From positions 1 to 64,000 of the forward strand of contig NW_027451295.1 of assembly GCF_964194025.1 (NCBI RefSeq): a DNA stretch of 64,000 nt, in the 5' to 3' direction. Below are positions 29,311 to 60,882 of the stretch, one piece after another (within the stretch, counting starts at the first letter, position 1; the number at the start of each line of letters is the position of its first letter). The notes under the pieces were generated by a model. That model was not told where the DNA came from and did not search any database. It worked only from the letters and a program-made list of their open reading frames with translations. This DNA comes from Convolutriloba macropyga. Its lineage: Eukaryota. The position numbers and the translations under genes were made by a program.

Positions 29311-29343
29311 ATCTATCAACCTCAGTCAAAAACATGAATCACA

Positions 29344-30703: not shown

Positions 30704-30889
30704 TGGGTGCGAGGGTTGGCCTAGGTTTTCAGACCCTTTCTAGGTTTTTACTCCAAGGGGACGCCTCATGTAGTCGGCGCCGCCATTCCACGCTGATGTG
30801 CACTCAAAATATCATTGTTATCCTTCCACCAGTGCCACTTTGTTTGCACGCACAGTTCTCCCGTAAGAATTTCAGTCTCTACGTACACA

Positions 30890-31942
30890 ATGGGGCGTGC
30901 TGCTGAGGATCTAGCATGGCGCTGGAAGCTTGTTCTTGAGTATGAGCGAGTGGGAAACTACTCTAAAGTCGCACAACGCCTACTATGCGATGCGAGAGTC
31001 GTGAAAAAGTGGGTGCTTCGCTATAAGGAGACTGGTGATGTGCAAGACAAGGACAGGTCTGGCAGACCCAGTGCAGGGTTGTCAAGGCCTGAGGTGCAGG
31101 AACTGCTGAAAGCAGGCATAGAGGATGGGCTGAAGTGTCCACAACTATCCAACAAGCTGAAGAAGGATATGGGAATCTCTGTGAGCAAGGAAACTGTGAG
31201 GTTGCATCTACATGCCAACTTGGGGCGGCCGCTTCGTCCACGAAAAAAGCCCCAGCTGACAGACAGCCACAAGGCCAAGCGCTTGGCTTTCTGTTTGCAG
31301 TGGGTGAACAGGGATTGGTCAAATGTGGCTGTGTCAGACTCTAAGATCTTTTGGCTCAGTCGAAAGGGCATTGGCAACAAGGTATGGGTGTTGTATGGGG
31401 CTGAACCACCTGTGGAGGCTGCGTACAGAGACTGCACCAAAGTTCATGCTTATGCAGCTGTCACCAGGTGGGGCAAAACTCCACTGTTCTTCACTGCAGG
31501 CACCACAGGAATTAAATTCCCATCTAAGGGAGTAGGTGCTCAGTTATACCTTCAACTATTGGAGCAGCAGTTGGTTCCAGCCATAAGGGAGCTCATGAAG
31601 CAATGCAACGGCGTTCAAAGGGGGCGCCCCTGGATATTTCAGCAAGATGGGGCCCCAGCCCATAGGGCCAAGGTCACCAAGGCATGGCTAGCACAACAAC
31701 CTGGCTTCACAGTGATGGAATGGCCCCCTAACAGCCCAGACTTGAGCTGGATTGAAAACCTATGGAGCGTGGTAGCTAAGCAACTTCACAAAAGGACAGA
31801 TTTGACACCTCAAAATTTCGCTCAAGCAGTGATTGAAGAGTGGGATAGGATCCCTAGCAACACCTACATGGCATTGTACAATTCCATTCAGCGAAGGCTG
31901 AGGTCTTGTATTGAGAACAATGGAGGGCATACAAAATACTAG
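30890..31942 (+). CDS. Tc1-like DD35E transposase, copy 2
   Basis: Translation identical to copy 1. Confidence 0.93.
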   Translation: MGRAAEDLAWRWKLVLEYERVGNYSKVAQRLLCDARVVKKWVLRYKETGDVQDKDRSGRPSAGLSRPEVQELLKAGIEDGLKCPQLSNKLKKDMGISVSKETVRLHLHANLGRPLRPRKKPQLTDSHKAKRLAFCLQWVNRDWSNVAVSDSKIFWLSRKGIGNKVWVLYGAEPPVEAAYRDCTKVHAYAAVTRWGKTPLFFTAGTTGIKFPSKGVGAQLYLQLLEQQLVPAIRELMKQCNGVQRGRPWIFQQDGAPAHRAKVTKAWLAQQPGFTVMEWPPNSPDLSWIENLWSVVAKQLHKRTDLTPQNFAQAVIEEWDRIPSNTYMALYNSIQRRLRSCIENNGGHTKY

Positions 31943-32197
31943 GTTGGAAGCATAGCTACCATGATTTTGATGTAAATCTATCAACCTCAGTCAAAAACAT
32001 GAATCACACTGTGGGTGCGAGGGTTGGCCTAGGTTTTCAGACCCTTTCTAGGTTTTTACTCCAAGGGGACGCCTCATGTAGTCGGCGCCGCCATTCCACG
32101 CTGATGTGCACTCAAAATATCATTGTTATCCTTCCACCAGTGCCACTTTGTTTGCACGCACAGTTCTCCCGTAAGAATTTCAGTCTCTACGTACACA

Positions 32198-33250
32198 ATG
32201 GGGCGTGCTGCTGAGGATCTAGCATGGCGCTGGAAGCTTGTTCTTGAGTATGAGCGAGTGGGAAACTACTCTAAAGTCGCACAACGCCTACTATGCGATG
32301 CGAGAGTCGTGAAAAAGTGGGTGCTTCGCTATAAGGAGACTGGTGATGTGCAAGACAAGGACAGGTCTGGCAGACCCAGTGCAGGGTTGTCAAGGCCTGA
32401 GGTGCAGGAACTGCTGAAAGCAGGCATAGAGGATGGGCTGAAGTGTCCACAACTATCCAACAAGCTGAAGAAGGATATGGGAATCTCTGTGAGCAAGGAA
32501 ACTGTGAGGTTGCATCTACATGCCAACTTGGGGCGGCCGCTTCGTCCACGAAAAAAGCCCCAGCTGACAGACAGCCACAAGGCCAAGCGCTTGGCTTTCT
32601 GTTTGCAGTGGGTGAACAGGGATTGGTCAAATGTGGCTGTGTCAGACTCTAAGATCTTTTGGCTCAGTCGAAAGGGCATTGGCAACAAGGTATGGGTGTT
32701 GTATGGGGCTGAACCACCTGTGGAGGCTGCGTACAGAGACTGCACCAAAGTTCATGCTTATGCAGCTGTCACCAGGTGGGGCAAAACTCCACTGTTCTTC
32801 ACTGCAGGCACCACAGGAATTAAATTCCCATCTAAGGGAGTAGGTGCTCAGTTATACCTTCAACTATTGGAGCAGCAGTTGGTTCCAGCCATAAGGGAGC
32901 TCATGAAGCAATGCAACGGCGTTCAAAGGGGGCGCCCCTGGATATTTCAGCAAGATGGGGCCCCAGCCCATAGGGCCAAGGTCACCAAGGCATGGCTAGC
33001 ACAACAACCTGGCTTCACAGTGATGGAATGGCCCCCTAACAGCCCAGACTTGAGCTGGATTGAAAACCTATGGAGCGTGGTAGCTAAGCAACTTCACAAA
33101 AGGACAGATTTGACACCTCAAAATTTCGCTCAAGCAGTGATTGAAGAGTGGGATAGGATCCCTAGCAACACCTACATGGCATTGTACAATTCCATTCAGC
33201 GAAGGCTGAGGTCTTGTATTGAGAACAATGGAGGGCATACAAAATACTAG
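32198..33250 (+). CDS. Tc1-like DD35E transposase, copy 3
   Basis: Translation identical to copy 1. Confidence 0.93.
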   Translation: MGRAAEDLAWRWKLVLEYERVGNYSKVAQRLLCDARVVKKWVLRYKETGDVQDKDRSGRPSAGLSRPEVQELLKAGIEDGLKCPQLSNKLKKDMGISVSKETVRLHLHANLGRPLRPRKKPQLTDSHKAKRLAFCLQWVNRDWSNVAVSDSKIFWLSRKGIGNKVWVLYGAEPPVEAAYRDCTKVHAYAAVTRWGKTPLFFTAGTTGIKFPSKGVGAQLYLQLLEQQLVPAIRELMKQCNGVQRGRPWIFQQDGAPAHRAKVTKAWLAQQPGFTVMEWPPNSPDLSWIENLWSVVAKQLHKRTDLTPQNFAQAVIEEWDRIPSNTYMALYNSIQRRLRSCIENNGGHTKY

Positions 33251-33505
33251 GTTGGAAGCATAGCTACCATGATTTTGATGTAAATCTATCAACCTCAGTC
33301 AAAAACATGAATCACACAGTGGGTGCGAGGGTTGGCCTAGGTTTTCAGACCCTTTCTAGGTTTTTACTCCAAGGGGACGCCTCATGTAGTCGGCGCCGCC
33401 ATTCCACGCTGATGTGCACTCAAAATATCATTGTTATCCTTCCACCAGTGCCACTTTGTTTGCACGCACAGTTCTCCCGTAAGAATTTCAGTCTCTACGT
33501 ACACA

Positions 33506-34558
33506 ATGGGGCGTGCTGCTGAGGATCTAGCATGGCGCTGGAAGCTTGTTCTTGAGTATGAGCGAGTGGGAAACTACTCTAAAGTCGCACAACGCCTACT
33601 ATGCGATGCGAGAGTCGTGAAAAAGTGGGTGCTTCGCTATAAGGAGACTGGTGATGTGCAAGACAAGGACAGGTCTGGCAGACCCAGTGCAGGGTTGTCA
33701 AGGCCTGAGGTGCAGGAACTGCTGAAAGCAGGCATAGAGGATGGGCTGAAGTGTCCACAACTATCCAACAAGCTGAAGAAGGATATGGGAATCTCTGTGA
33801 GCAAGGAAACTGTGAGGTTGCATCTACATGCCAACTTGGGGCGGCCGCTTCGTCCACGAAAAAAGCCCCAGCTGACAGACAGCCACAAGGCCAAGCGCTT
33901 GGCTTTCTGTTTGCAGTGGGTGAACAGGGATTGGTCAAATGTGGCTGTGTCAGACTCTAAGATCTTTTGGCTCAGTCGAAAGGGCATTGGCAACAAGGTA
34001 TGGGTGTTGTATGGGGCTGAACCACCTGTGGAGGCTGCGTACAGAGACTGCACCAAAGTTCATGCTTATGCAGCTGTCACCAGGTGGGGCAAAACTCCAC
34101 TGTTCTTCACTGCAGGCACCACAGGAATTAAATTCCCATCTAAGGGAGTAGGTGCTCAGTTATACCTTCAACTATTGGAGCAGCAGTTGGTTCCAGCCAT
34201 AAGGGAGCTCATGAAGCAATGCAACGGCGTTCAAAGGGGGCGCCCCTGGATATTTCAGCAAGATGGGGCCCCAGCCCATAGGGCCAAGGTCACCAAGGCA
34301 TGGCTAGCACAACAACCTGGCTTCACAGTGATGGAATGGCCCCCTAACAGCCCAGACTTGAGCTGGATTGAAAACCTATGGAGCGTGGTAGCTAAGCAAC
34401 TTCACAAAAGGACAGATTTGACACCTCAAAATTTCGCTCAAGCAGTGATTGAAGAGTGGGATAGGATCCCTAGCAACACCTACATGGCATTGTACAATTC
34501 CATTCAGCGAAGGCTGAGGTCTTGTATTGAGAACAATGGAGGGCATACAAAATACTAG
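33506..34558 (+). CDS. Tc1-like DD35E transposase, copy 4
   Basis: Translation identical to copy 1. Confidence 0.93.
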   Translation: MGRAAEDLAWRWKLVLEYERVGNYSKVAQRLLCDARVVKKWVLRYKETGDVQDKDRSGRPSAGLSRPEVQELLKAGIEDGLKCPQLSNKLKKDMGISVSKETVRLHLHANLGRPLRPRKKPQLTDSHKAKRLAFCLQWVNRDWSNVAVSDSKIFWLSRKGIGNKVWVLYGAEPPVEAAYRDCTKVHAYAAVTRWGKTPLFFTAGTTGIKFPSKGVGAQLYLQLLEQQLVPAIRELMKQCNGVQRGRPWIFQQDGAPAHRAKVTKAWLAQQPGFTVMEWPPNSPDLSWIENLWSVVAKQLHKRTDLTPQNFAQAVIEEWDRIPSNTYMALYNSIQRRLRSCIENNGGHTKY

Positions 34559-34813
34559 GTTGGAAGCATAGCTACCATGATTTTGATGTAAATCTATCAA
34601 CCTCAGTCAAAAACATGAATCACACTGTGGGTGCGAGGGTTGGCCTAGGTTTTCAGACCCTTTCTAGGTTTTTACTCCAAGGGGACGCCTCATGTAGTCG
34701 GCGCCGCCATTCCACGCTGATGTGCACTCAAAATATCATTGTTATCCTTCCACCAGTGCCACTTTGTTTGCACGCACAGTTCTCCCGTAAGAATTTCAGT
34801 CTCTACGTACACA

Positions 34814-35866
34814 ATGGGGCGTGCTGCTGAGGATCTAGCATGGCGCTGGAAGCTTGTTCTTGAGTATGAGCGAGTGGGAAACTACTCTAAAGTCGCACAA
34901 CGCCTACTATGCGATGCGAGAGTCGTGAAAAAGTGGGTGCTTCGCTATAAGGAGACTGGTGATGTGCAAGACAAGGACAGGTCTGGCAGACCCAGTGCAG
35001 GGTTGTCAAGGCCTGAGGTGCAGGAACTGCTGAAAGCAGGCATAGAGGATGGGCTGAAGTGTCCACAACTATCCAACAAGCTGAAGAAGGATATGGGAAT
35101 CTCTGTGAGCAAGGAAACTGTGAGGTTGCATCTACATGCCAACTTGGGGCGGCCGCTTCGTCCACGAAAAAAGCCCCAGCTGACAGACAGCCACAAGGCC
35201 AAGCGCTTGGCTTTCTGTTTGCAGTGGGTGAACAGGGATTGGTCAAATGTGGCTGTGTCAGACTCTAAGATCTTTTGGCTCAGTCGAAAGGGCATTGGCA
35301 ACAAGGTATGGGTGTTGTATGGGGCTGAACCACCTGTGGAGGCTGCGTACAGAGACTGCACCAAAGTTCATGCTTATGCAGCTGTCACCAGGTGGGGCAA
35401 AACTCCACTGTTCTTCACTGCAGGCACCACAGGAATTAAATTCCCATCTAAGGGAGTAGGTGCTCAGTTATACCTTCAACTATTGGAGCAGCAGTTGGTT
35501 CCAGCCATAAGGGAGCTCATGAAGCAATGCAACGGCGTTCAAAGGGGGCGCCCCTGGATATTTCAGCAAGATGGGGCCCCAGCCCATAGGGCCAAGGTCA
35601 CCAAGGCATGGCTAGCACAACAACCTGGCTTCACAGTGATGGAATGGCCCCCTAACAGCCCAGACTTGAGCTGGATTGAAAACCTATGGAGCGTGGTAGC
35701 TAAGCAACTTCACAAAAGGACAGATTTGACACCTCAAAATTTCGCTCAAGCAGTGATTGAAGAGTGGGATAGGATCCCTAGCAACACCTACATGGCATTG
35801 TACAATTCCATTCAGCGAAGGCTGAGGTCTTGTATTGAGAACAATGGAGGGCATACAAAATACTAG
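34814..35866 (+). CDS. Tc1-like DD35E transposase, copy 5
   Basis: Translation identical to copy 1. Confidence 0.93.
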   Translation: MGRAAEDLAWRWKLVLEYERVGNYSKVAQRLLCDARVVKKWVLRYKETGDVQDKDRSGRPSAGLSRPEVQELLKAGIEDGLKCPQLSNKLKKDMGISVSKETVRLHLHANLGRPLRPRKKPQLTDSHKAKRLAFCLQWVNRDWSNVAVSDSKIFWLSRKGIGNKVWVLYGAEPPVEAAYRDCTKVHAYAAVTRWGKTPLFFTAGTTGIKFPSKGVGAQLYLQLLEQQLVPAIRELMKQCNGVQRGRPWIFQQDGAPAHRAKVTKAWLAQQPGFTVMEWPPNSPDLSWIENLWSVVAKQLHKRTDLTPQNFAQAVIEEWDRIPSNTYMALYNSIQRRLRSCIENNGGHTKY

Positions 35867-36121
35867 GTTGGAAGCATAGCTACCATGATTTTGATGTAAA
35901 TCTATCAACCTCAGTCAAAAACATGAATCACACAGTGGGTGCGAGGGTTGGCCTAGGTTTTCAGACCCTTTCTAGGTTTTTACTCCAAGGGGACGCCTCA
36001 TGTAGTCGGCGCCGCCATTCCACGCTGATGTGCACTCAAAATATCATTGTTATCCTTCCACCAGTGCCACTTTGTTTGCACGCACAGTTCTCCCGTAAGA
36101 ATTTCAGTCTCTACGTACACA

Positions 36122-37174
36122 ATGGGGCGTGCTGCTGAGGATCTAGCATGGCGCTGGAAGCTTGTTCTTGAGTATGAGCGAGTGGGAAACTACTCTAAAG
36201 TCGCACAACGCCTACTATGCGATGCGAGAGTCGTGAAAAAGTGGGTGCTTCGCTATAAGGAGACTGGTGATGTGCAAGACAAGGACAGGTCTGGCAGACC
36301 CAGTGCAGGGTTGTCAAGGCCTGAGGTGCAGGAACTGCTGAAAGCAGGCATAGAGGATGGGCTGAAGTGTCCACAACTATCCAACAAGCTGAAGAAGGAT
36401 ATGGGAATCTCTGTGAGCAAGGAAACTGTGAGGTTGCATCTACATGCCAACTTGGGGCGGCCGCTTCGTCCACGAAAAAAGCCCCAGCTGACAGACAGCC
36501 ACAAGGCCAAGCGCTTGGCTTTCTGTTTGCAGTGGGTGAACAGGGATTGGTCAAATGTGGCTGTGTCAGACTCTAAGATCTTTTGGCTCAGTCGAAAGGG
36601 CATTGGCAACAAGGTATGGGTGTTGTATGGGGCTGAACCACCTGTGGAGGCTGCGTACAGAGACTGCACCAAAGTTCATGCTTATGCAGCTGTCACCAGG
36701 TGGGGCAAAACTCCACTGTTCTTCACTGCAGGCACCACAGGAATTAAATTCCCATCTAAGGGAGTAGGTGCTCAGTTATACCTTCAACTATTGGAGCAGC
36801 AGTTGGTTCCAGCCATAAGGGAGCTCATGAAGCAATGCAACGGCGTTCAAAGGGGGCGCCCCTGGATATTTCAGCAAGATGGGGCCCCAGCCCATAGGGC
36901 CAAGGTCACCAAGGCATGGCTAGCACAACAACCTGGCTTCACAGTGATGGAATGGCCCCCTAACAGCCCAGACTTGAGCTGGATTGAAAACCTATGGAGC
37001 GTGGTAGCTAAGCAACTTCACAAAAGGACAGATTTGACACCTCAAAATTTCGCTCAAGCAGTGATTGAAGAGTGGGATAGGATCCCTAGCAACACCTACA
37101 TGGCATTGTACAATTCCATTCAGCGAAGGCTGAGGTCTTGTATTGAGAACAATGGAGGGCATACAAAATACTAG
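36122..37174 (+). CDS. Tc1-like DD35E transposase, copy 6
   Basis: Translation identical to copy 1. Confidence 0.93.
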   Translation: MGRAAEDLAWRWKLVLEYERVGNYSKVAQRLLCDARVVKKWVLRYKETGDVQDKDRSGRPSAGLSRPEVQELLKAGIEDGLKCPQLSNKLKKDMGISVSKETVRLHLHANLGRPLRPRKKPQLTDSHKAKRLAFCLQWVNRDWSNVAVSDSKIFWLSRKGIGNKVWVLYGAEPPVEAAYRDCTKVHAYAAVTRWGKTPLFFTAGTTGIKFPSKGVGAQLYLQLLEQQLVPAIRELMKQCNGVQRGRPWIFQQDGAPAHRAKVTKAWLAQQPGFTVMEWPPNSPDLSWIENLWSVVAKQLHKRTDLTPQNFAQAVIEEWDRIPSNTYMALYNSIQRRLRSCIENNGGHTKY

Positions 37175-37429
37175 GTTGGAAGCATAGCTACCATGATTTT
37201 GATGTAAATCTATCAACCTCAGTCAAAAACATGAATCACACAGTGGGTGCGAGGGTTGGCCTAGGTTTTCAGACCCTTTCTAGGTTTTTACTCCAAGGGG
37301 ACGCCTCATGTAGTCGGCGCCGCCATTCCACGCTGATGTGCACTCAAAATATCATTGTTATCCTTCCACCAGTGCCACTTTGTTTGCACGCACAGTTCTC
37401 CCGTAAGAATTTCAGTCTCTACGTACACA

Positions 37430-38482
37430 ATGGGGCGTGCTGCTGAGGATCTAGCATGGCGCTGGAAGCTTGTTCTTGAGTATGAGCGAGTGGGAAACTA
37501 CTCTAAAGTCGCACAACGCCTACTATGCGATGCGAGAGTCGTGAAAAAGTGGGTGCTTCGCTATAAGGAGACTGGTGATGTGCAAGACAAGGACAGGTCT
37601 GGCAGACCCAGTGCAGGGTTGTCAAGGCCTGAGGTGCAGGAACTGCTGAAAGCAGGCATAGAGGATGGGCTGAAGTGTCCACAACTATCCAACAAGCTGA
37701 AGAAGGATATGGGAATCTCTGTGAGCAAGGAAACTGTGAGGTTGCATCTACATGCCAACTTGGGGCGGCCGCTTCGTCCACGAAAAAAGCCCCAGCTGAC
37801 AGACAGCCACAAGGCCAAGCGCTTGGCTTTCTGTTTGCAGTGGGTGAACAGGGATTGGTCAAATGTGGCTGTGTCAGACTCTAAGATCTTTTGGCTCAGT
37901 CGAAAGGGCATTGGCAACAAGGTATGGGTGTTGTATGGGGCTGAACCACCTGTGGAGGCTGCGTACAGAGACTGCACCAAAGTTCATGCTTATGCAGCTG
38001 TCACCAGGTGGGGCAAAACTCCACTGTTCTTCACTGCAGGCACCACAGGAATTAAATTCCCATCTAAGGGAGTAGGTGCTCAGTTATACCTTCAACTATT
38101 GGAGCAGCAGTTGGTTCCAGCCATAAGGGAGCTCATGAAGCAATGCAACGGCGTTCAAAGGGGGCGCCCCTGGATATTTCAGCAAGATGGGGCCCCAGCC
38201 CATAGGGCCAAGGTCACCAAGGCATGGCTAGCACAACAACCTGGCTTCACAGTGATGGAATGGCCCCCTAACAGCCCAGACTTGAGCTGGATTGAAAACC
38301 TATGGAGCGTGGTAGCTAAGCAACTTCACAAAAGGACAGATTTGACACCTCAAAATTTCGCTCAAGCAGTGATTGAAGAGTGGGATAGGATCCCTAGCAA
38401 CACCTACATGGCATTGTACAATTCCATTCAGCGAAGGCTGAGGTCTTGTATTGAGAACAATGGAGGGCATACAAAATACTAG
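37430..38482 (+). CDS. Tc1-like DD35E transposase, copy 7
   Basis: Translation identical to copy 1. Confidence 0.93.
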   Translation: MGRAAEDLAWRWKLVLEYERVGNYSKVAQRLLCDARVVKKWVLRYKETGDVQDKDRSGRPSAGLSRPEVQELLKAGIEDGLKCPQLSNKLKKDMGISVSKETVRLHLHANLGRPLRPRKKPQLTDSHKAKRLAFCLQWVNRDWSNVAVSDSKIFWLSRKGIGNKVWVLYGAEPPVEAAYRDCTKVHAYAAVTRWGKTPLFFTAGTTGIKFPSKGVGAQLYLQLLEQQLVPAIRELMKQCNGVQRGRPWIFQQDGAPAHRAKVTKAWLAQQPGFTVMEWPPNSPDLSWIENLWSVVAKQLHKRTDLTPQNFAQAVIEEWDRIPSNTYMALYNSIQRRLRSCIENNGGHTKY

Positions 38483-38737
38483 GTTGGAAGCATAGCTACC
38501 ATGATTTTGATGTAAATCTATCAACCTCAGTCAAAAACATGAATCACACTGTGGGTGCGAGGGTTGGCCTAGGTTTTCAGACCCTTTCTAGGTTTTTACT
38601 CCAAGGGGACGCCTCATGTAGTCGGCGCCGCCATTCCACGCTGATGTGCACTCAAAATATCATTGTTATCCTTCCACCAGTGCCACTTTGTTTGCACGCA
38701 CAGTTCTCCCGTAAGAATTTCAGTCTCTACGTACACA

Positions 38738-39790: not shown

Positions 39791-40045
39791 GTTGGAAGCA
39801 TAGCTACCATGATTTTGATGTAAATCTATCAACCTCAGTCAAAAACATGAATCACACTGTGGGTGCGAGGGTTGGCCTAGGTTTTCAGACCCTTTCTAGG
39901 TTTTTACTCCAAGGGGACGCCTCATGTAGTCGGCGCCGCCATTCCACGCTGATGTGCACTCAAAATATCATTGTTATCCTTCCACCAGTGCCACTTTGTT
40001 TGCACGCACAGTTCTCCCGTAAGAATTTCAGTCTCTACGTACACA

Positions 40046-41098: not shown

Positions 41099-41353
41099 GT
41101 TGGAAGCATAGCTACCATGATTTTGATGTAAATCTATCAACCTCAGTCAAAAACATGAATCACACAGTGGGTGCGAGGGTTGGCCTAGGTTTTCAGACCC
41201 TTTCTAGGTTTTTACTCCAAGGGGACGCCTCATGTAGTCGGCGCCGCCATTCCACGCTGATGTGCACTCAAAATATCATTGTTATCCTTCCACCAGTGCC
41301 ACTTTGTTTGCACGCACAGTTCTCCCGTAAGAATTTCAGTCTCTACGTACACA

Positions 41354-50303: not shown

Positions 50304-50369
50304 GTTGGAAGCATAGCTACCATGATTTTGATGTAAATCTATCAACCTCAGTCAAAAACATGAATCACA

Positions 50370-51729: not shown

Positions 51730-51915
51730 TGGGTGCGAGGGTTGGCCTAGGTTTTCAGACCCTTTCTAGGTTTTTACTCCAAGGGGACGCCTCATGTAGT
51801 CGGCGCCGCCATTCCACGCTGATGTGCACTCAAAATATCATTGTTATCCTTCCACCAGTGCCACTTTGTTTGCACGCACAGTTCTCCCGTAAGAATTTCA
51901 GTCTCTACGTACACA

Positions 51916-52968
51916 ATGGGGCGTGCTGCTGAGGATCTAGCATGGCGCTGGAAGCTTGTTCTTGAGTATGAGCGAGTGGGAAACTACTCTAAAGTCGCAC
52001 AACGCCTACTATGCGATGCGAGAGTCGTGAAAAAGTGGGTGCTTCGCTATAAGGAGACTGGTGATGTGCAAGACAAGGACAGGTCTGGCAGACCCAGTGC
52101 AGGGTTGTCAAGGCCTGAGGTGCAGGAACTGCTGAAAGCAGGCATAGAGGATGGGCTGAAGTGTCCACAACTATCCAACAAGCTGAAGAAGGATATGGGA
52201 ATCTCTGTGAGCAAGGAAACTGTGAGGTTGCATCTACATGCCAACTTGGGGCGGCCGCTTCGTCCACGAAAAAAGCCCCAGCTGACAGACAGCCACAAGG
52301 CCAAGCGCTTGGCTTTCTGTTTGCAGTGGGTGAACAGGGATTGGTCAAATGTGGCTGTGTCAGACTCTAAGATCTTTTGGCTCAGTCGAAAGGGCATTGG
52401 CAACAAGGTATGGGTGTTGTATGGGGCTGAACCACCTGTGGAGGCTGCGTACAGAGACTGCACCAAAGTTCATGCTTATGCAGCTGTCACCAGGTGGGGC
52501 AAAACTCCACTGTTCTTCACTGCAGGCACCACAGGAATTAAATTCCCATCTAAGGGAGTAGGTGCTCAGTTATACCTTCAACTATTGGAGCAGCAGTTGG
52601 TTCCAGCCATAAGGGAGCTCATGAAGCAATGCAACGGCGTTCAAAGGGGGCGCCCCTGGATATTTCAGCAAGATGGGGCCCCAGCCCATAGGGCCAAGGT
52701 CACCAAGGCATGGCTAGCACAACAACCTGGCTTCACAGTGATGGAATGGCCCCCTAACAGCCCAGACTTGAGCTGGATTGAAAACCTATGGAGCGTGGTA
52801 GCTAAGCAACTTCACAAAAGGACAGATTTGACACCTCAAAATTTCGCTCAAGCAGTGATTGAAGAGTGGGATAGGATCCCTAGCAACACCTACATGGCAT
52901 TGTACAATTCCATTCAGCGAAGGCTGAGGTCTTGTATTGAGAACAATGGAGGGCATACAAAATACTAG
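51916..52968 (+). CDS. Tc1-like DD35E transposase, copy 16
   Basis: Translation identical to copy 1. Confidence 0.93.
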   Translation: MGRAAEDLAWRWKLVLEYERVGNYSKVAQRLLCDARVVKKWVLRYKETGDVQDKDRSGRPSAGLSRPEVQELLKAGIEDGLKCPQLSNKLKKDMGISVSKETVRLHLHANLGRPLRPRKKPQLTDSHKAKRLAFCLQWVNRDWSNVAVSDSKIFWLSRKGIGNKVWVLYGAEPPVEAAYRDCTKVHAYAAVTRWGKTPLFFTAGTTGIKFPSKGVGAQLYLQLLEQQLVPAIRELMKQCNGVQRGRPWIFQQDGAPAHRAKVTKAWLAQQPGFTVMEWPPNSPDLSWIENLWSVVAKQLHKRTDLTPQNFAQAVIEEWDRIPSNTYMALYNSIQRRLRSCIENNGGHTKY

Positions 52969-53223
52969 GTTGGAAGCATAGCTACCATGATTTTGATGTA
53001 AATCTATCAACCTCAGTCAAAAACATGAATCACACTGTGGGTGCGAGGGTTGGCCTAGGTTTTCAGACCCTTTCTAGGTTTTTACTCCAAGGGGACGCCT
53101 CATGTAGTCGGCGCCGCCATTCCACGCTGATGTGCACTCAAAATATCATTGTTATCCTTCCACCAGTGCCACTTTGTTTGCACGCACAGTTCTCCCGTAA
53201 GAATTTCAGTCTCTACGTACACA

Positions 53224-54276
53224 ATGGGGCGTGCTGCTGAGGATCTAGCATGGCGCTGGAAGCTTGTTCTTGAGTATGAGCGAGTGGGAAACTACTCTAA
53301 AGTCGCACAACGCCTACTATGCGATGCGAGAGTCGTGAAAAAGTGGGTGCTTCGCTATAAGGAGACTGGTGATGTGCAAGACAAGGACAGGTCTGGCAGA
53401 CCCAGTGCAGGGTTGTCAAGGCCTGAGGTGCAGGAACTGCTGAAAGCAGGCATAGAGGATGGGCTGAAGTGTCCACAACTATCCAACAAGCTGAAGAAGG
53501 ATATGGGAATCTCTGTGAGCAAGGAAACTGTGAGGTTGCATCTACATGCCAACTTGGGGCGGCCGCTTCGTCCACGAAAAAAGCCCCAGCTGACAGACAG
53601 CCACAAGGCCAAGCGCTTGGCTTTCTGTTTGCAGTGGGTGAACAGGGATTGGTCAAATGTGGCTGTGTCAGACTCTAAGATCTTTTGGCTCAGTCGAAAG
53701 GGCATTGGCAACAAGGTATGGGTGTTGTATGGGGCTGAACCACCTGTGGAGGCTGCGTACAGAGACTGCACCAAAGTTCATGCTTATGCAGCTGTCACCA
53801 GGTGGGGCAAAACTCCACTGTTCTTCACTGCAGGCACCACAGGAATTAAATTCCCATCTAAGGGAGTAGGTGCTCAGTTATACCTTCAACTATTGGAGCA
53901 GCAGTTGGTTCCAGCCATAAGGGAGCTCATGAAGCAATGCAACGGCGTTCAAAGGGGGCGCCCCTGGATATTTCAGCAAGATGGGGCCCCAGCCCATAGG
54001 GCCAAGGTCACCAAGGCATGGCTAGCACAACAACCTGGCTTCACAGTGATGGAATGGCCCCCTAACAGCCCAGACTTGAGCTGGATTGAAAACCTATGGA
54101 GCGTGGTAGCTAAGCAACTTCACAAAAGGACAGATTTGACACCTCAAAATTTCGCTCAAGCAGTGATTGAAGAGTGGGATAGGATCCCTAGCAACACCTA
54201 CATGGCATTGTACAATTCCATTCAGCGAAGGCTGAGGTCTTGTATTGAGAACAATGGAGGGCATACAAAATACTAG
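53224..54276 (+). CDS. Tc1-like DD35E transposase, copy 17
   Basis: Translation identical to copy 1. Confidence 0.93.
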   Translation: MGRAAEDLAWRWKLVLEYERVGNYSKVAQRLLCDARVVKKWVLRYKETGDVQDKDRSGRPSAGLSRPEVQELLKAGIEDGLKCPQLSNKLKKDMGISVSKETVRLHLHANLGRPLRPRKKPQLTDSHKAKRLAFCLQWVNRDWSNVAVSDSKIFWLSRKGIGNKVWVLYGAEPPVEAAYRDCTKVHAYAAVTRWGKTPLFFTAGTTGIKFPSKGVGAQLYLQLLEQQLVPAIRELMKQCNGVQRGRPWIFQQDGAPAHRAKVTKAWLAQQPGFTVMEWPPNSPDLSWIENLWSVVAKQLHKRTDLTPQNFAQAVIEEWDRIPSNTYMALYNSIQRRLRSCIENNGGHTKY

Positions 54277-54531
54277 GTTGGAAGCATAGCTACCATGATT
54301 TTGATGTAAATCTATCAACCTCAGTCAAAAACATGAATCACACAGTGGGTGCGAGGGTTGGCCTAGGTTTTCAGACCCTTTCTAGGTTTTTACTCCAAGG
54401 GGACGCCTCATGTAGTCGGCGCCGCCATTCCACGCTGATGTGCACTCAAAATATCATTGTTATCCTTCCACCAGTGCCACTTTGTTTGCACGCACAGTTC
54501 TCCCGTAAGAATTTCAGTCTCTACGTACACA

Positions 54532-55584
54532 ATGGGGCGTGCTGCTGAGGATCTAGCATGGCGCTGGAAGCTTGTTCTTGAGTATGAGCGAGTGGGAAAC
54601 TACTCTAAAGTCGCACAACGCCTACTATGCGATGCGAGAGTCGTGAAAAAGTGGGTGCTTCGCTATAAGGAGACTGGTGATGTGCAAGACAAGGACAGGT
54701 CTGGCAGACCCAGTGCAGGGTTGTCAAGGCCTGAGGTGCAGGAACTGCTGAAAGCAGGCATAGAGGATGGGCTGAAGTGTCCACAACTATCCAACAAGCT
54801 GAAGAAGGATATGGGAATCTCTGTGAGCAAGGAAACTGTGAGGTTGCATCTACATGCCAACTTGGGGCGGCCGCTTCGTCCACGAAAAAAGCCCCAGCTG
54901 ACAGACAGCCACAAGGCCAAGCGCTTGGCTTTCTGTTTGCAGTGGGTGAACAGGGATTGGTCAAATGTGGCTGTGTCAGACTCTAAGATCTTTTGGCTCA
55001 GTCGAAAGGGCATTGGCAACAAGGTATGGGTGTTGTATGGGGCTGAACCACCTGTGGAGGCTGCGTACAGAGACTGCACCAAAGTTCATGCTTATGCAGC
55101 TGTCACCAGGTGGGGCAAAACTCCACTGTTCTTCACTGCAGGCACCACAGGAATTAAATTCCCATCTAAGGGAGTAGGTGCTCAGTTATACCTTCAACTA
55201 TTGGAGCAGCAGTTGGTTCCAGCCATAAGGGAGCTCATGAAGCAATGCAACGGCGTTCAAAGGGGGCGCCCCTGGATATTTCAGCAAGATGGGGCCCCAG
55301 CCCATAGGGCCAAGGTCACCAAGGCATGGCTAGCACAACAACCTGGCTTCACAGTGATGGAATGGCCCCCTAACAGCCCAGACTTGAGCTGGATTGAAAA
55401 CCTATGGAGCGTGGTAGCTAAGCAACTTCACAAAAGGACAGATTTGACACCTCAAAATTTCGCTCAAGCAGTGATTGAAGAGTGGGATAGGATCCCTAGC
55501 AACACCTACATGGCATTGTACAATTCCATTCAGCGAAGGCTGAGGTCTTGTATTGAGAACAATGGAGGGCATACAAAATACTAG
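54532..55584 (+). CDS. Tc1-like DD35E transposase, copy 18
   Basis: Translation identical to copy 1. Confidence 0.93.
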   Translation: MGRAAEDLAWRWKLVLEYERVGNYSKVAQRLLCDARVVKKWVLRYKETGDVQDKDRSGRPSAGLSRPEVQELLKAGIEDGLKCPQLSNKLKKDMGISVSKETVRLHLHANLGRPLRPRKKPQLTDSHKAKRLAFCLQWVNRDWSNVAVSDSKIFWLSRKGIGNKVWVLYGAEPPVEAAYRDCTKVHAYAAVTRWGKTPLFFTAGTTGIKFPSKGVGAQLYLQLLEQQLVPAIRELMKQCNGVQRGRPWIFQQDGAPAHRAKVTKAWLAQQPGFTVMEWPPNSPDLSWIENLWSVVAKQLHKRTDLTPQNFAQAVIEEWDRIPSNTYMALYNSIQRRLRSCIENNGGHTKY

Positions 55585-55839
55585 GTTGGAAGCATAGCTA
55601 CCATGATTTTGATGTAAATCTATCAACCTCAGTCAAAAACATGAATCACACTGTGGGTGCGAGGGTTGGCCTAGGTTTTCAGACCCTTTCTAGGTTTTTA
55701 CTCCAAGGGGACGCCTCATGTAGTCGGCGCCGCCATTCCACGCTGATGTGCACTCAAAATATCATTGTTATCCTTCCACCAGTGCCACTTTGTTTGCACG
55801 CACAGTTCTCCCGTAAGAATTTCAGTCTCTACGTACACA

Positions 55840-56892
55840 ATGGGGCGTGCTGCTGAGGATCTAGCATGGCGCTGGAAGCTTGTTCTTGAGTATGAGCGAG
55901 TGGGAAACTACTCTAAAGTCGCACAACGCCTACTATGCGATGCGAGAGTCGTGAAAAAGTGGGTGCTTCGCTATAAGGAGACTGGTGATGTGCAAGACAA
56001 GGACAGGTCTGGCAGACCCAGTGCAGGGTTGTCAAGGCCTGAGGTGCAGGAACTGCTGAAAGCAGGCATAGAGGATGGGCTGAAGTGTCCACAACTATCC
56101 AACAAGCTGAAGAAGGATATGGGAATCTCTGTGAGCAAGGAAACTGTGAGGTTGCATCTACATGCCAACTTGGGGCGGCCGCTTCGTCCACGAAAAAAGC
56201 CCCAGCTGACAGACAGCCACAAGGCCAAGCGCTTGGCTTTCTGTTTGCAGTGGGTGAACAGGGATTGGTCAAATGTGGCTGTGTCAGACTCTAAGATCTT
56301 TTGGCTCAGTCGAAAGGGCATTGGCAACAAGGTATGGGTGTTGTATGGGGCTGAACCACCTGTGGAGGCTGCGTACAGAGACTGCACCAAAGTTCATGCT
56401 TATGCAGCTGTCACCAGGTGGGGCAAAACTCCACTGTTCTTCACTGCAGGCACCACAGGAATTAAATTCCCATCTAAGGGAGTAGGTGCTCAGTTATACC
56501 TTCAACTATTGGAGCAGCAGTTGGTTCCAGCCATAAGGGAGCTCATGAAGCAATGCAACGGCGTTCAAAGGGGGCGCCCCTGGATATTTCAGCAAGATGG
56601 GGCCCCAGCCCATAGGGCCAAGGTCACCAAGGCATGGCTAGCACAACAACCTGGCTTCACAGTGATGGAATGGCCCCCTAACAGCCCAGACTTGAGCTGG
56701 ATTGAAAACCTATGGAGCGTGGTAGCTAAGCAACTTCACAAAAGGACAGATTTGACACCTCAAAATTTCGCTCAAGCAGTGATTGAAGAGTGGGATAGGA
56801 TCCCTAGCAACACCTACATGGCATTGTACAATTCCATTCAGCGAAGGCTGAGGTCTTGTATTGAGAACAATGGAGGGCATACAAAATACTAG
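55840..56892 (+). CDS. Tc1-like DD35E transposase, copy 19
   Basis: Translation identical to copy 1. Confidence 0.93.
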   Translation: MGRAAEDLAWRWKLVLEYERVGNYSKVAQRLLCDARVVKKWVLRYKETGDVQDKDRSGRPSAGLSRPEVQELLKAGIEDGLKCPQLSNKLKKDMGISVSKETVRLHLHANLGRPLRPRKKPQLTDSHKAKRLAFCLQWVNRDWSNVAVSDSKIFWLSRKGIGNKVWVLYGAEPPVEAAYRDCTKVHAYAAVTRWGKTPLFFTAGTTGIKFPSKGVGAQLYLQLLEQQLVPAIRELMKQCNGVQRGRPWIFQQDGAPAHRAKVTKAWLAQQPGFTVMEWPPNSPDLSWIENLWSVVAKQLHKRTDLTPQNFAQAVIEEWDRIPSNTYMALYNSIQRRLRSCIENNGGHTKY

Positions 56893-57147
56893 GTTGGAAG
56901 CATAGCTACCATGATTTTGATGTAAATCTATCAACCTCAGTCAAAAACATGAATCACACAGTGGGTGCGAGGGTTGGCCTAGGTTTTCAGACCCTTTCTA
57001 GGTTTTTACTCCAAGGGGACGCCTCATGTAGTCGGCGCCGCCATTCCACGCTGATGTGCACTCAAAATATCATTGTTATCCTTCCACCAGTGCCACTTTG
57101 TTTGCACGCACAGTTCTCCCGTAAGAATTTCAGTCTCTACGTACACA

Positions 57148-58200
57148 ATGGGGCGTGCTGCTGAGGATCTAGCATGGCGCTGGAAGCTTGTTCTTGAGTA
57201 TGAGCGAGTGGGAAACTACTCTAAAGTCGCACAACGCCTACTATGCGATGCGAGAGTCGTGAAAAAGTGGGTGCTTCGCTATAAGGAGACTGGTGATGTG
57301 CAAGACAAGGACAGGTCTGGCAGACCCAGTGCAGGGTTGTCAAGGCCTGAGGTGCAGGAACTGCTGAAAGCAGGCATAGAGGATGGGCTGAAGTGTCCAC
57401 AACTATCCAACAAGCTGAAGAAGGATATGGGAATCTCTGTGAGCAAGGAAACTGTGAGGTTGCATCTACATGCCAACTTGGGGCGGCCGCTTCGTCCACG
57501 AAAAAAGCCCCAGCTGACAGACAGCCACAAGGCCAAGCGCTTGGCTTTCTGTTTGCAGTGGGTGAACAGGGATTGGTCAAATGTGGCTGTGTCAGACTCT
57601 AAGATCTTTTGGCTCAGTCGAAAGGGCATTGGCAACAAGGTATGGGTGTTGTATGGGGCTGAACCACCTGTGGAGGCTGCGTACAGAGACTGCACCAAAG
57701 TTCATGCTTATGCAGCTGTCACCAGGTGGGGCAAAACTCCACTGTTCTTCACTGCAGGCACCACAGGAATTAAATTCCCATCTAAGGGAGTAGGTGCTCA
57801 GTTATACCTTCAACTATTGGAGCAGCAGTTGGTTCCAGCCATAAGGGAGCTCATGAAGCAATGCAACGGCGTTCAAAGGGGGCGCCCCTGGATATTTCAG
57901 CAAGATGGGGCCCCAGCCCATAGGGCCAAGGTCACCAAGGCATGGCTAGCACAACAACCTGGCTTCACAGTGATGGAATGGCCCCCTAACAGCCCAGACT
58001 TGAGCTGGATTGAAAACCTATGGAGCGTGGTAGCTAAGCAACTTCACAAAAGGACAGATTTGACACCTCAAAATTTCGCTCAAGCAGTGATTGAAGAGTG
58101 GGATAGGATCCCTAGCAACACCTACATGGCATTGTACAATTCCATTCAGCGAAGGCTGAGGTCTTGTATTGAGAACAATGGAGGGCATACAAAATACTAG
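57148..58200 (+). CDS. Tc1-like DD35E transposase, copy 20
   Basis: Translation identical to copy 1. Confidence 0.93.
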   Translation: MGRAAEDLAWRWKLVLEYERVGNYSKVAQRLLCDARVVKKWVLRYKETGDVQDKDRSGRPSAGLSRPEVQELLKAGIEDGLKCPQLSNKLKKDMGISVSKETVRLHLHANLGRPLRPRKKPQLTDSHKAKRLAFCLQWVNRDWSNVAVSDSKIFWLSRKGIGNKVWVLYGAEPPVEAAYRDCTKVHAYAAVTRWGKTPLFFTAGTTGIKFPSKGVGAQLYLQLLEQQLVPAIRELMKQCNGVQRGRPWIFQQDGAPAHRAKVTKAWLAQQPGFTVMEWPPNSPDLSWIENLWSVVAKQLHKRTDLTPQNFAQAVIEEWDRIPSNTYMALYNSIQRRLRSCIENNGGHTKY

Positions 58201-58455
58201 GTTGGAAGCATAGCTACCATGATTTTGATGTAAATCTATCAACCTCAGTCAAAAACATGAATCACACTGTGGGTGCGAGGGTTGGCCTAGGTTTTCAGAC
58301 CCTTTCTAGGTTTTTACTCCAAGGGGACGCCTCATGTAGTCGGCGCCGCCATTCCACGCTGATGTGCACTCAAAATATCATTGTTATCCTTCCACCAGTG
58401 CCACTTTGTTTGCACGCACAGTTCTCCCGTAAGAATTTCAGTCTCTACGTACACA

Positions 58456-59508
58456 ATGGGGCGTGCTGCTGAGGATCTAGCATGGCGCTGGAAGCTTGTT
58501 CTTGAGTATGAGCGAGTGGGAAACTACTCTAAAGTCGCACAACGCCTACTATGCGATGCGAGAGTCGTGAAAAAGTGGGTGCTTCGCTATAAGGAGACTG
58601 GTGATGTGCAAGACAAGGACAGGTCTGGCAGACCCAGTGCAGGGTTGTCAAGGCCTGAGGTGCAGGAACTGCTGAAAGCAGGCATAGAGGATGGGCTGAA
58701 GTGTCCACAACTATCCAACAAGCTGAAGAAGGATATGGGAATCTCTGTGAGCAAGGAAACTGTGAGGTTGCATCTACATGCCAACTTGGGGCGGCCGCTT
58801 CGTCCACGAAAAAAGCCCCAGCTGACAGACAGCCACAAGGCCAAGCGCTTGGCTTTCTGTTTGCAGTGGGTGAACAGGGATTGGTCAAATGTGGCTGTGT
58901 CAGACTCTAAGATCTTTTGGCTCAGTCGAAAGGGCATTGGCAACAAGGTATGGGTGTTGTATGGGGCTGAACCACCTGTGGAGGCTGCGTACAGAGACTG
59001 CACCAAAGTTCATGCTTATGCAGCTGTCACCAGGTGGGGCAAAACTCCACTGTTCTTCACTGCAGGCACCACAGGAATTAAATTCCCATCTAAGGGAGTA
59101 GGTGCTCAGTTATACCTTCAACTATTGGAGCAGCAGTTGGTTCCAGCCATAAGGGAGCTCATGAAGCAATGCAACGGCGTTCAAAGGGGGCGCCCCTGGA
59201 TATTTCAGCAAGATGGGGCCCCAGCCCATAGGGCCAAGGTCACCAAGGCATGGCTAGCACAACAACCTGGCTTCACAGTGATGGAATGGCCCCCTAACAG
59301 CCCAGACTTGAGCTGGATTGAAAACCTATGGAGCGTGGTAGCTAAGCAACTTCACAAAAGGACAGATTTGACACCTCAAAATTTCGCTCAAGCAGTGATT
59401 GAAGAGTGGGATAGGATCCCTAGCAACACCTACATGGCATTGTACAATTCCATTCAGCGAAGGCTGAGGTCTTGTATTGAGAACAATGGAGGGCATACAA
59501 AATACTAG
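58456..59508 (+). CDS. Tc1-like DD35E transposase, copy 21
   Basis: Translation identical to copy 1. Confidence 0.93.
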   Translation: MGRAAEDLAWRWKLVLEYERVGNYSKVAQRLLCDARVVKKWVLRYKETGDVQDKDRSGRPSAGLSRPEVQELLKAGIEDGLKCPQLSNKLKKDMGISVSKETVRLHLHANLGRPLRPRKKPQLTDSHKAKRLAFCLQWVNRDWSNVAVSDSKIFWLSRKGIGNKVWVLYGAEPPVEAAYRDCTKVHAYAAVTRWGKTPLFFTAGTTGIKFPSKGVGAQLYLQLLEQQLVPAIRELMKQCNGVQRGRPWIFQQDGAPAHRAKVTKAWLAQQPGFTVMEWPPNSPDLSWIENLWSVVAKQLHKRTDLTPQNFAQAVIEEWDRIPSNTYMALYNSIQRRLRSCIENNGGHTKY

Positions 59509-59763
59509 GTTGGAAGCATAGCTACCATGATTTTGATGTAAATCTATCAACCTCAGTCAAAAACATGAATCACACAGTGGGTGCGAGGGTTGGCCTAGGT
59601 TTTCAGACCCTTTCTAGGTTTTTACTCCAAGGGGACGCCTCATGTAGTCGGCGCCGCCATTCCACGCTGATGTGCACTCAAAATATCATTGTTATCCTTC
59701 CACCAGTGCCACTTTGTTTGCACGCACAGTTCTCCCGTAAGAATTTCAGTCTCTACGTACACA

Positions 59764-60816
59764 ATGGGGCGTGCTGCTGAGGATCTAGCATGGCGCTGGA
59801 AGCTTGTTCTTGAGTATGAGCGAGTGGGAAACTACTCTAAAGTCGCACAACGCCTACTATGCGATGCGAGAGTCGTGAAAAAGTGGGTGCTTCGCTATAA
59901 GGAGACTGGTGATGTGCAAGACAAGGACAGGTCTGGCAGACCCAGTGCAGGGTTGTCAAGGCCTGAGGTGCAGGAACTGCTGAAAGCAGGCATAGAGGAT
60001 GGGCTGAAGTGTCCACAACTATCCAACAAGCTGAAGAAGGATATGGGAATCTCTGTGAGCAAGGAAACTGTGAGGTTGCATCTACATGCCAACTTGGGGC
60101 GGCCGCTTCGTCCACGAAAAAAGCCCCAGCTGACAGACAGCCACAAGGCCAAGCGCTTGGCTTTCTGTTTGCAGTGGGTGAACAGGGATTGGTCAAATGT
60201 GGCTGTGTCAGACTCTAAGATCTTTTGGCTCAGTCGAAAGGGCATTGGCAACAAGGTATGGGTGTTGTATGGGGCTGAACCACCTGTGGAGGCTGCGTAC
60301 AGAGACTGCACCAAAGTTCATGCTTATGCAGCTGTCACCAGGTGGGGCAAAACTCCACTGTTCTTCACTGCAGGCACCACAGGAATTAAATTCCCATCTA
60401 AGGGAGTAGGTGCTCAGTTATACCTTCAACTATTGGAGCAGCAGTTGGTTCCAGCCATAAGGGAGCTCATGAAGCAATGCAACGGCGTTCAAAGGGGGCG
60501 CCCCTGGATATTTCAGCAAGATGGGGCCCCAGCCCATAGGGCCAAGGTCACCAAGGCATGGCTAGCACAACAACCTGGCTTCACAGTGATGGAATGGCCC
60601 CCTAACAGCCCAGACTTGAGCTGGATTGAAAACCTATGGAGCGTGGTAGCTAAGCAACTTCACAAAAGGACAGATTTGACACCTCAAAATTTCGCTCAAG
60701 CAGTGATTGAAGAGTGGGATAGGATCCCTAGCAACACCTACATGGCATTGTACAATTCCATTCAGCGAAGGCTGAGGTCTTGTATTGAGAACAATGGAGG
60801 GCATACAAAATACTAG
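59764..60816 (+). CDS. Tc1-like DD35E transposase, copy 22
   Basis: Translation identical to copy 1. Confidence 0.93.
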   Translation: MGRAAEDLAWRWKLVLEYERVGNYSKVAQRLLCDARVVKKWVLRYKETGDVQDKDRSGRPSAGLSRPEVQELLKAGIEDGLKCPQLSNKLKKDMGISVSKETVRLHLHANLGRPLRPRKKPQLTDSHKAKRLAFCLQWVNRDWSNVAVSDSKIFWLSRKGIGNKVWVLYGAEPPVEAAYRDCTKVHAYAAVTRWGKTPLFFTAGTTGIKFPSKGVGAQLYLQLLEQQLVPAIRELMKQCNGVQRGRPWIFQQDGAPAHRAKVTKAWLAQQPGFTVMEWPPNSPDLSWIENLWSVVAKQLHKRTDLTPQNFAQAVIEEWDRIPSNTYMALYNSIQRRLRSCIENNGGHTKY

Positions 60817-60882
60817 GTTGGAAGCATAGCTACCATGATTTTGATGTAAATCTATCAACCTCAGTCAAAAACATGAATCACA

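Follow-up and report, generated by a model that had tools for sequence, protein, structure and literature searches.

Bacterial composite transposons of the Tn9 type consist of directly repeated IS copies that flank a cargo. In the Sleeping Beauty system, a dimorphic C(A/T)G is the canonical footprint left by excision (PMC6943129). Tandem clusters of Bari1 in Drosophila melanogaster have been debated for their origin, either by rolling circle or by a dimer followed by unequal exchange (PMC8834629, PMC5932611). Repeats intrinsic to an element, combined with unequal exchange, are a named route to arrays of transposable elements (TEs) (PMC5932611).

The locus described here lies in a stretch of 64,000 nucleotides of Convolutriloba macropyga (contig NW_027451295.1), hereafter the window. 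From position 26679 to its end, the window holds B, a transposase cassette of 1,305 bp, in 23 copies, and A, a non-coding element of 1,360 bp bearing terminal inverted repeats (TIRs), in six. Starts of successive B units are spaced by 1,308 bp, or by 2,665 bp if an A module lies between them. The array is flanked at its left by TA (flank letters ...GTGATA, then TA, then CACTACTCC), and it is organized as follows:

26677..26678, no strand: left outer border of the array, TA dinucleotide, one half of the composite's target-site duplication
26679..28038, + strand: A element copy 1, non-coding, 1,360 bp from CAC to GTG, with a 24-bp TIR (22/24 matching)
28039..29343, + strand: B core, 1,305 bp, TGGGTG...ATCACA, single transposase cassette with A on either side
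29344..30703, + strand: A element copy 2, TIRs at 29344-29367 and 30680-30703, inner flanks CA and TG, not TA
30704..43780, + strand: run 1, 10 B cores and 9 C-W-G scars (T A T A A T T A A)
30890..31942, + strand: transposase open reading frame (ORF), 350 amino acids plus stop, shown for one B unit; the same ORF lies in all B units
32010, 33318, 34626, 35934, 37242, 38550, 39858, 41166, 42474: central bases W of run 1 (T, A, T, A, A, T, T, A, A)
43781..45140, + strand: A element copy 3
45141..50369, + strand: run 2, 4 B cores and 3 scars (T A T)
46447, 47755, 49063: central bases W of run 2 (T, A, T)
50370..51729, + strand: A element copy 4
51730..60882, + strand: run 3, 7 B cores and 6 scars (T A T A T A)
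53036, 54344, 55652, 56960, 58268, 59576: central bases W of run 3 (T, A, T, A, T, A)
60883..62242, + strand: A element copy 5
62243..63547, + strand: B core, single
63548..64000, + strand: A element copy 6, incomplete at the window end; the array runs on past the window

The window also contains a run of N at 18633-18784. An Rfam scan of the whole window returned zero RNA families, and the candidate reading as an rRNA or spliced-leader array that had taken site-specific insertions was given up.

Judging by its domains and catalytic residues, B is predicted to encode an intact DDE transposase of the IS630/Tc1/mariner superfamily. Pfam domains HTH_Tnp_Tc3_2 (4.5e-13) and DDE_3 (7.5e-12) are recognized in the protein, residues D150, D253 and E289 are invariant across six relatives, and the closest solved structure is the catalytic domain of SB100X (5cr4, E 1e-22). 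The D-to-E spacing is 36 residues here and 35 residues in Sleeping Beauty. The simple layout of the superfamily, i.e., one TIR pair placed directly around the transposase gene, is not the one found at this locus: B sits outside each A, in the interval that separates the right end of an A from the left end of the following one, and this A-B layout recurs in families at 64%, 46%, and 38% identity, in several samples. In families only 38-64% identical, the ends of the B core (TG...CA) and the border ...GTG/TG... are conserved, which is unexplained if B is a passive “flank.”

The A element proper reads CAC...GTG and, in its second copy, spans 29344-30703, its ends being placed by loose ends in contigs assembled from reads (Logan contigs); judged from copies at other sites, the module borders drawn in the initial annotation were off by 1-2 bp. 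A carries no transposase remnant detectable by tblastn, and its interpretation as a decayed autonomous copy was rejected on this basis. B has no TIR, its two ends agreeing over only about 6 bases, and was likewise rejected as a TIR element. From its end letters, A was also considered as a Helitron (A^T insertion) or as a CACTA element (3-bp duplication); both readings were rejected because the target duplications are TA (2 bp, at unrelated sites) and A is partnered by a DDE transposase of the Tc1 type. All six A modules show zero sequence difference in the window, and the 23 B units differ solely at W, the last base of the 1,308-bp unit as first delimited.

Copies at other loci were sought in the long-read ENA assembly ERZ25071359, via a protein cluster (P0001) near-identical to the window transposase; one amino-acid difference blocked an exact match of the window's own protein in the look-up. 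Eleven loci of the window's family were retrieved (L001-L003, L008-L010, L012, and L015-L018). A solitary A-B-A directly flanked by TA on both sides occurs at nine other sites, and one site, L008, holds A-B-A-B-A flanked by TA; these ten loci lie at unrelated sites. TA adjoins the outer edges of units elsewhere at 10/11 left and 11/11 right borders, and the outer ends of the composite are always A ends, one left and one right. Variants of A and B co-vary among these loci, forming three haplotype groups, and the A copies of a locus are mutually identical in 10 of 11 multi-A loci, L017 being the exception. Solo A elements with TA flanks are also present in Logan contigs. A search of the ENA assembly with an ORF spanning the left border of the array gave no match. 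The basic mobile unit is A-B-A between two TA dinucleotides, 4,025 bp long, and it moves as one; the stretch in the window is probably an expanded copy of a composite transposon of the Tc1/mariner type.

The B units of a run are joined by ...ATCACA-CWG-TGGGTG..., and the window contains 18 such joints, of which the central base W (A or T) is the sole variable base of the array. A locus of special structure, L016 (flank-TA-CAG-B-CTG-B-A-TA), bears on the nature of these letters. There, CAG beside the TA takes the place of an outer A that had B on its right side only, which identifies C-W-G as an A-excision footprint. The earlier view of the joints as excision-type scars with a dimorphic centre, A or T in the middle, is upheld.

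The same edge can be read differently. B together with the joint letters (CAG TGGGTG ... ATCACA CTG, 1,311 bp) might be a Tc1-like element with short CAGTG-type ends, an improbable proposal, as is its corollary that the B-B joints are excised B molecules united head-to-tail via 3-nt overhangs. The termini of Tc1 and Tc3 resemble CAGTG..., which is what the ends of B read once the joint letters are included. The left edge of L016 is also readable as TA followed by CAGTGGGTG, the end letters of B are conserved in distant families, and the joint has the sequence predicted for a Sleeping Beauty circle junction that carries a T:T mismatch (PMC6943129). However, an agreement over about 6 bases is no real TIR, the CAG/CTG letters are missing from B ends that adjoin A, and B with TA on both sides is absent from the 11 family loci of ERZ25071359 and from the Logan loose ends. 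It is A that bears the 24-bp TIR and the TA duplications, and A ends that always close the composite.

Re-reading of the window confirmed the order of W previously reported, TATAATTAA in run 1, TAT in run 2 and TATATA in run 3, each run beginning T-A-T after an A module. As a higher-order period, with W as the only marker, period 2 is seen in runs 2 and 3 and none in run 1. Comparison of the order between assemblies gave partial agreement: in an ENA long-read contig, runs 1 and 2 have the window's order, but the third run consists of T then eight A, unlike the T A T A T A of the window. That contig carries a circular flag at 19x. It could be chimeric, built from two arrays or two alleles, and could share source reads with the window. 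Both CAG and CTG joints are present in Logan contigs from three sequencing runs of this organism, evidence that speaks to the presence of the two forms and not to their CAG:CTG ratio, the depth of the T form being unreported. The T/A letters are unlikely to be assembly noise because runs 1 and 2 agree in the ENA contig and both forms occur in Logan contigs. That the array or its A/T letters were made by repeat collapse or polishing is thus very improbable: the unit identity is unusually perfect, the third run differs between the two assemblies and some sequencing runs have A, not G, at 29951 and 30007, but about 20 kb (runs 1 and 2) agree in two assemblies, and both joint forms and both A-B borders were recovered in contigs of three separate runs. 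In the array of a distant relative, L004, all joints (10/10) are CTG and single-nucleotide polymorphisms return every third unit.

The order tests reported here were picked post hoc, on data already seen. In the window, 12 of 15 neighbouring scars alternate (binomial p = 0.018 one-sided, 0.035 two-sided; permutation p = 0.031). The claim that alternation dominates holds for this overall count and for runs 2 and 3, where it is perfect (7/7), but not for run 1, which stands at chance level (5/8, p = 0.36) with three phase breaks, and support for the claim is modest. The 3-letter prefix common to all three runs has p = 0.010. As to the 1:1 ratio of CAG and CTG that had been put forward, 9 T and 9 A are indeed counted, but such a split is uninformative (p = 0.19). 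Alternation stands at 1/8 in the third run of the ENA contig (p = 0.035) and at 0/9 in L004, whose uniform CTG joints have p = 0.002 if independent. Its rate is heterogeneous between runs, as 7/7 against the 1/8 of the ENA third run gives a Fisher p of 0.0014. Scar order is non-random, but only weakly.

These figures weigh on a rival reading, in which a former (A-B)n array lost each A separately, the centre was A or T at random and the pattern is due to chance. The even split, the chance-level alternation of run 1, an overall alternation reaching only p 0.02-0.035 in a test chosen after the fact, and the separate origins of footprints at least in L016 and the L004 family are all compatible with it. 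It is nevertheless unlikely, given the shared TAT prefix, the strings of the ENA third run and of L004, the unequal alternation between runs, and the identity of 23 B and 6 A units, which indicates recent copying and not an old array losing its A elements singly. Local copying is favored because all modules are identical, a prefix is common to the three runs and alternation rates are unequal; the earlier statement that the scars are not 18 independent events stands for the same reasons.

A second possibility derives the order from circles. Cutting of the inner, reversed A ends would free B, which would circularize via its overhangs and leave a mismatch at the centre. Replication and recombination would turn this circle into a dimer whose two joints are CAG and CTG, and rolling-circle copying, or recombination into a chromosomal B, would yield alternating runs. 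The joint of such a circle would match the observed B-B joint exactly, runs 2 and 3 alternate perfectly, a rolling-circle origin has been proposed for Bari1 arrays (PMC8834629), and three array contigs were closed as circular by assemblers, though this is a frequent artefact of tandem repeats. We nonetheless hold both the circle and its dimeric continuation to be improbable. No observation calls for either, and the strict alternation that a dimer predicts fails: it is broken three times in run 1, the ENA third run reads T then eight A, and L004 has CTG throughout with a 3-unit period. A CAG adjoins the TA flank in L016, where a B-B circle joint is impossible; the A-B-A-B-A intermediate required by the excision route exists at L008; and a closed 1,308-bp Logan contig is the expected product of any tandem array. 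In a broader form, there is a slim chance of self-amplification, in which paired cuts by the transposase at the inner, reversed A ends free B as a fragment, which closes on itself into circles, or joins into concatemers, through a mismatched C-W-G joint and then recombines into chromosomal B. Were this true, the T/A strings would be a direct record of circle-derived, partly dimeric insertions, and a transposase gene lying outside its own TIRs would have a way to multiply.

Unequal crossover from two founder scars, mentioned at the outset only as the simpler alternative, is judged the better reading, and the T/A barcode most likely reflects growth of the array by block copying of units already scarred. 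The model as a whole, in which unequal exchange builds arrays, A is excised and scarred blocks are copied, is one that we favor with some reserve. Direct copies of A, and later of B, would first engage in unequal homologous exchange and yield (A-B)n-A arrays. Internal A elements would then be excised by the transposase, and the flank overhangs (CA... and ...TG) would be end-joined into a 3-bp C-W-G footprint centred on A or T. Finally, B units carrying scars would be multiplied in blocks through further unequal exchange: period-2 stretches would stem from the copying of blocks of two units that hold a CTG scar and a CAG scar, stretches of one letter from the copying of single units, and the TAT prefix of all runs from a copied block that starts with an A element. 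If scarred B units are copied in blocks, the T/A order is a record of ancestry. Block duplication of a few founder scars fits the order. The whole string of joints reduces to a root A-B-t-B-a-B-A in 7 tandem duplications, but shuffled strings require about the same number (P = 0.35), and the scar order cannot separate the models for this reason.

The chemistry of the footprint must be assumed, either as 2-nt overhangs minus one base or as trimming. Pairing of complementary 3-nt overhangs (CAG with CTG), as in Sleeping Beauty, is inapplicable because the A ends are CAC and GTG, not CAG and CTG. Gene conversion or assembly polishing could be partial causes of module identity. The order of events is unreadable from the sequence, and a released B fragment that re-integrated could equally give the first B-B joints.

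On its own, the scar order adds little: circle, dimer, and unequal exchange are not separated by it, and the simplest model fits. The underlying system is unusual in placing a transposase gene between two direct-repeat, TIR-bearing, non-coding elements. This Tc1/mariner relative is active-looking: it moves as A-B-A, expands to arrays and, in the germline, retains canonical footprints of excision. If confirmed, the locus would offer a natural archive of Tc1-type footprint formation, and a case for asking why inner ends have CA/TG flanks and whether the choice of ends is thereby steered. The T/A strings could mark unequal exchange in a TE array when compared across individuals.

How does this locus compare with the systems described so far? 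With Sleeping Beauty, it shares TA target duplication, a 3-bp C(A/T)G scar with a dimorphic centre and the fold family of the DDE transposase (5cr4, E 1e-22). It departs from it in that the excised A ends in CAC/GTG, so that the outer scar letters are unable to pair, in that CA and TG, not TA, border the scars, and in that the scars have become fixed and multiplied in a germline array. Like the Bari1 clusters, it is a tandem series of tens of Tc1-like transposase units that are near-identical and have lost a few terminal letters at each joint, and the debate of rolling circle versus dimer plus unequal exchange carries over to it. Bari1 units, however, are whole elements with TIRs and uniform joints (PMC8834629, PMC5932611), whereas the repeated unit here lacks TIRs, shares the array with interspersed copies of a partner that bears them, and has dimorphic joints; its design also exists as a mobile A-B-A unit. 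The bacterial composite Tn630 (PMC11544213) resembles it in having two copies of a mobile element around a cargo, with paired outer ends that produce a target duplication. In bacterial composites as here, direct repeats permit tandem amplification of the cargo by homologous exchange. Unlike them, this eukaryotic composite has non-coding flanking elements, carries its own transposase gene as the cargo and has inner ends that abut CA/TG, not TA. Finally, as in TE arrays built by unequal exchange (PMC5932611), direct repeats within one element would seed the arrays and variants may take on multi-unit periods, a clear 3 in L004 and 2 in runs 2 and 3 of the window; the markers here are excision footprints, not point mutations or insertions.

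Repeat search and direct comparison of the copies delimit an array that starts at 26679 and fills the remainder of the window. In the units initially drawn, it comprises 23 B units of 1,308 bp and six A modules of 1,357 bp, the sixth being cut at 64000. Within the window, direct comparison showed that the six A copies are mutually identical and that the 23 B copies are identical except for their final base, which is A or T. The barcode formed by this base at the 18 B-B joints was confirmed exactly as first described, i.e., TATAATTAA / TAT / TATATA for the three runs of consecutive B cores (30704..43780, 45141..50369 and 51730..60882). Each joint reads ...ATCACA-C[A/T]G-TGGGTG..., the variable position of a B preceding an A module is A, and the final base of an A module preceding a B is T.

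Module borders were set by comparing Logan contigs from three runs of the same organism with window positions 28700-31300 (2,601 letters). In other contexts the match to A begins at 29343 and finishes at 30704, so that A proper is CAC...GTG (29344-30703, 1,360 bp) with TA on either side; the B core is therefore TGGGTG...ATCACA (1,305 bp), and the scar consists of three bases, C-W-G (W being A or T), at the place of an A. Within the array, the bases adjoining the A elements are CA and TG instead of TA, and the left edge of the array reads TA|CAC... at 26677-26679. A is non-coding, contains no transposase remnant and has a terminal inverted repeat of 24 bp, the two arms of which agree at 22/24 positions. 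B encodes an intact transposase with HTH_Tnp_Tc3_2 and DDE_3 domains; among solved structures, it comes closest to the catalytic domain of Sleeping Beauty SB100X (5cr4, E 1e-22), and when it is aligned with five relatives (37-64% identity), D150, D253 and E289 do not vary. The features are as follows:

12090-15473, intact non-LTR retrotransposon ORF, 1,127 aa, with RVT_1 and an endonuclease domain, upstream of the array
17444-18075, 20248-20726, 22200-22370, 23952-24018 and 24341-24642, repeat tracts left of the array
18633-18784, N run of 152 N
30890-31942, intact transposase ORF, 350 aa, in the unit starting at 30703

The retrotransposon, together with a PRP38-like exon, an EGF-like ORF and several short tandem repeats also lying upstream, indicates that the array sits in ordinary TE-rich chromosomal DNA, where it starts at a TA site. 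(CGACCCC)43 and (TG)33 tracts lie just to its left; 31-bp repeats form two blocks with the common core ATCGGTATCGATAGT, and a 320-bp tandem duplication is also present.

A transposase word search retrieved a near-identical protein cluster in the long-read ENA assembly ERZ25071359, the contigs of which were compared. Single A-B-A units occupy nine unrelated genomic sites, one locus (L008) reads A-B-A-B-A and another (L016) reads flank-TA-CAG-B-CTG-B-A-TA. At these loci TA adjoins the outer A ends on 10/11 left and 11/11 right edges, A and B variants co-vary in three haplotype groups, and A copies within a unit are mutually identical in 10/11 loci, the exception (L017) having slightly different copies (1,361 vs 1,362 bp aligned). 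Unrelated sites, TA flanks and co-variation together show that A-B-A transposes as a unit, with one A supplying its left end and the other A its right end. The sole composite with a non-TA left flank (L010:1656-1682) reads ...GGCACAGT|CACTACTCC and has TA on its right. At A positions 608 and 664 (window 29951 and 30007), all six window copies carry G; in Logan contigs of the three runs, 29951 is A and 30007 predominantly A (1100/1450 in X4), and GG, GA and AA types all occur in the ENA assembly. The window array haplotype is also present in two solitary copies (L009 and L012).

At L016, CAG stands directly after TA in place of the outer A, a position with no B on its left side, which identifies C-W-G as a remnant of A removal and not merely a B-B connector. 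In Sleeping Beauty, the canonical footprint is TACAGTA or TACTGTA, depending on which way a central mismatch is resolved (PMC6943129), and C-W-G shares this form and its A/T centre. Unlike Sleeping Beauty, however, A ends in CAC/GTG, which prevents pairing between the outer bases of 3-nt overhangs; the scar would be compatible with 2-nt overhangs (CA, TG) joined minus one base, or with trimmed 3-nt overhangs. A B fragment closed on itself would show the very joint left by A excision, hence the two are indistinguishable from sequence alone. Some contribution of released B fragments to the array is possible, if unlikely. The array-only contigs ctg21194_19x_c (L006/L007/L011), ctg14747c (L004) and ctg329324_2x_c (L019) are all flagged circular by the assembler, the sole hint of circles; these flags are probably a tandem-repeat artefact, the lengths not being whole multiples of the unit.

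Neighboring joints alternate in 12 of 15 pairs (binomial p 0.018 one-sided, 0.035 two-sided; permutation with fixed composition, 0.031). This signal resides in runs 2 and 3 (7/7), run 1, the longest, alternating in 5/8 pairs (p 0.36). All runs share a three-letter prefix (p 0.010), and a 9:9 A/T split is often expected by chance (p 0.19). As the tests were picked after the pattern was seen, the evidence for a non-random order is modest. Seven tandem duplications suffice to derive the full string of joints and A modules from the root A-B-t-B-a-B-A; shuffled strings take 5-12 (P(<=7) = 0.35) and are about as reducible, so that block duplication would account for nearly every string of this kind and has no value as a test.

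The ENA contig ctg21194 (35.5 kb; L006, L007, L011) represents the window haplotype and exactly repeats run 1 (TATAATTAA) and run 2 (TAT), although this assembly may share source reads with the window and hence not be fully independent. Beyond the A element that follows, the contig run reads T then eight A, vs TATATA in the window. The A element before this third run differs at one position (664A), and the contig is flagged circular at 19x depth, vs 3-9x in neighboring contigs, so that a different allele or array may be the source of the third run. With the contig taken at face value, alternation differs between window runs 2 and 3 (7/7) and this run (1/8; Fisher p 0.0014), and such unequal rates are the signature of local copying with differing block sizes. 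In another sample, a family 48% identical (L004) forms at least 10 units of 1,283 bp joined by ...GCACA-CTG-TGGAC...; CTG occupies all 10 joints (p 0.002 under independence) and point variants recur at every third unit. This array clearly expanded by block copying from one founder joint.

The barcode is thus best read as a record of copying ancestry. Direct repeats of A-B-A would first yield (A-B)n-A by unequal exchange, L008 representing such a stage; the transposase would then take out internal A elements, leaving C-W-G behind, and later unequal exchange would duplicate B units along with their scars. Amplification through a B circle or dimer, as the initial annotation had suggested, is contradicted in its strict dimer rolling-circle form by the breaks in run 1, the T-plus-eight-A run and L004, whereas the simpler alternative of that annotation, unequal crossover from two founder scars, is preferable given the L008 stage, block copying in L004 and the uneven alternation between runs. 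Independent excisions may explain part of run 1, but are hard to reconcile with prefixes common to the runs, with homogeneous runs and with 23 B and six A copies that are completely identical.

This A/B layout, in which a B core starting with TG comes directly after a TIR element with the end ...GTG, recurs in distant families with protein identities of 64% (L005), 46% (L020, ERZ25071359) and 38% (L019, from a different sample). L020:7000-13200 shows an A'-B'-A'-B'-A' layout with one TA and one TG inner flank. Many transposase relatives (protein clusters P0002-P0014) lie on contigs measuring 2.6-2.8 kb, which roughly equals the combined size of a single A and a single B and is the expected short-read assembly outcome for A-B-A or (A-B)n. 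A biofilter and a sediment metagenome each contain about one-tenth of the sampled A and B words, and a second organism one-fifth; environmental samples thus contain relatives of either the element or its host.

In the literature searched, no description was found of a eukaryotic Tc1/mariner element with its transposase gene between two direct non-coding TIR-bearing copies; composite transposons of this superfamily were reported only recently, in a bacterium (PMC11544213). The nearest described TE arrays of the superfamily are the Bari1 clusters of Drosophila, the origin of which is debated between rolling circle and dimer plus unequal exchange (PMC8834629, PMC5932611), i.e., in the same terms as that of the C. 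macropyga A/B array.
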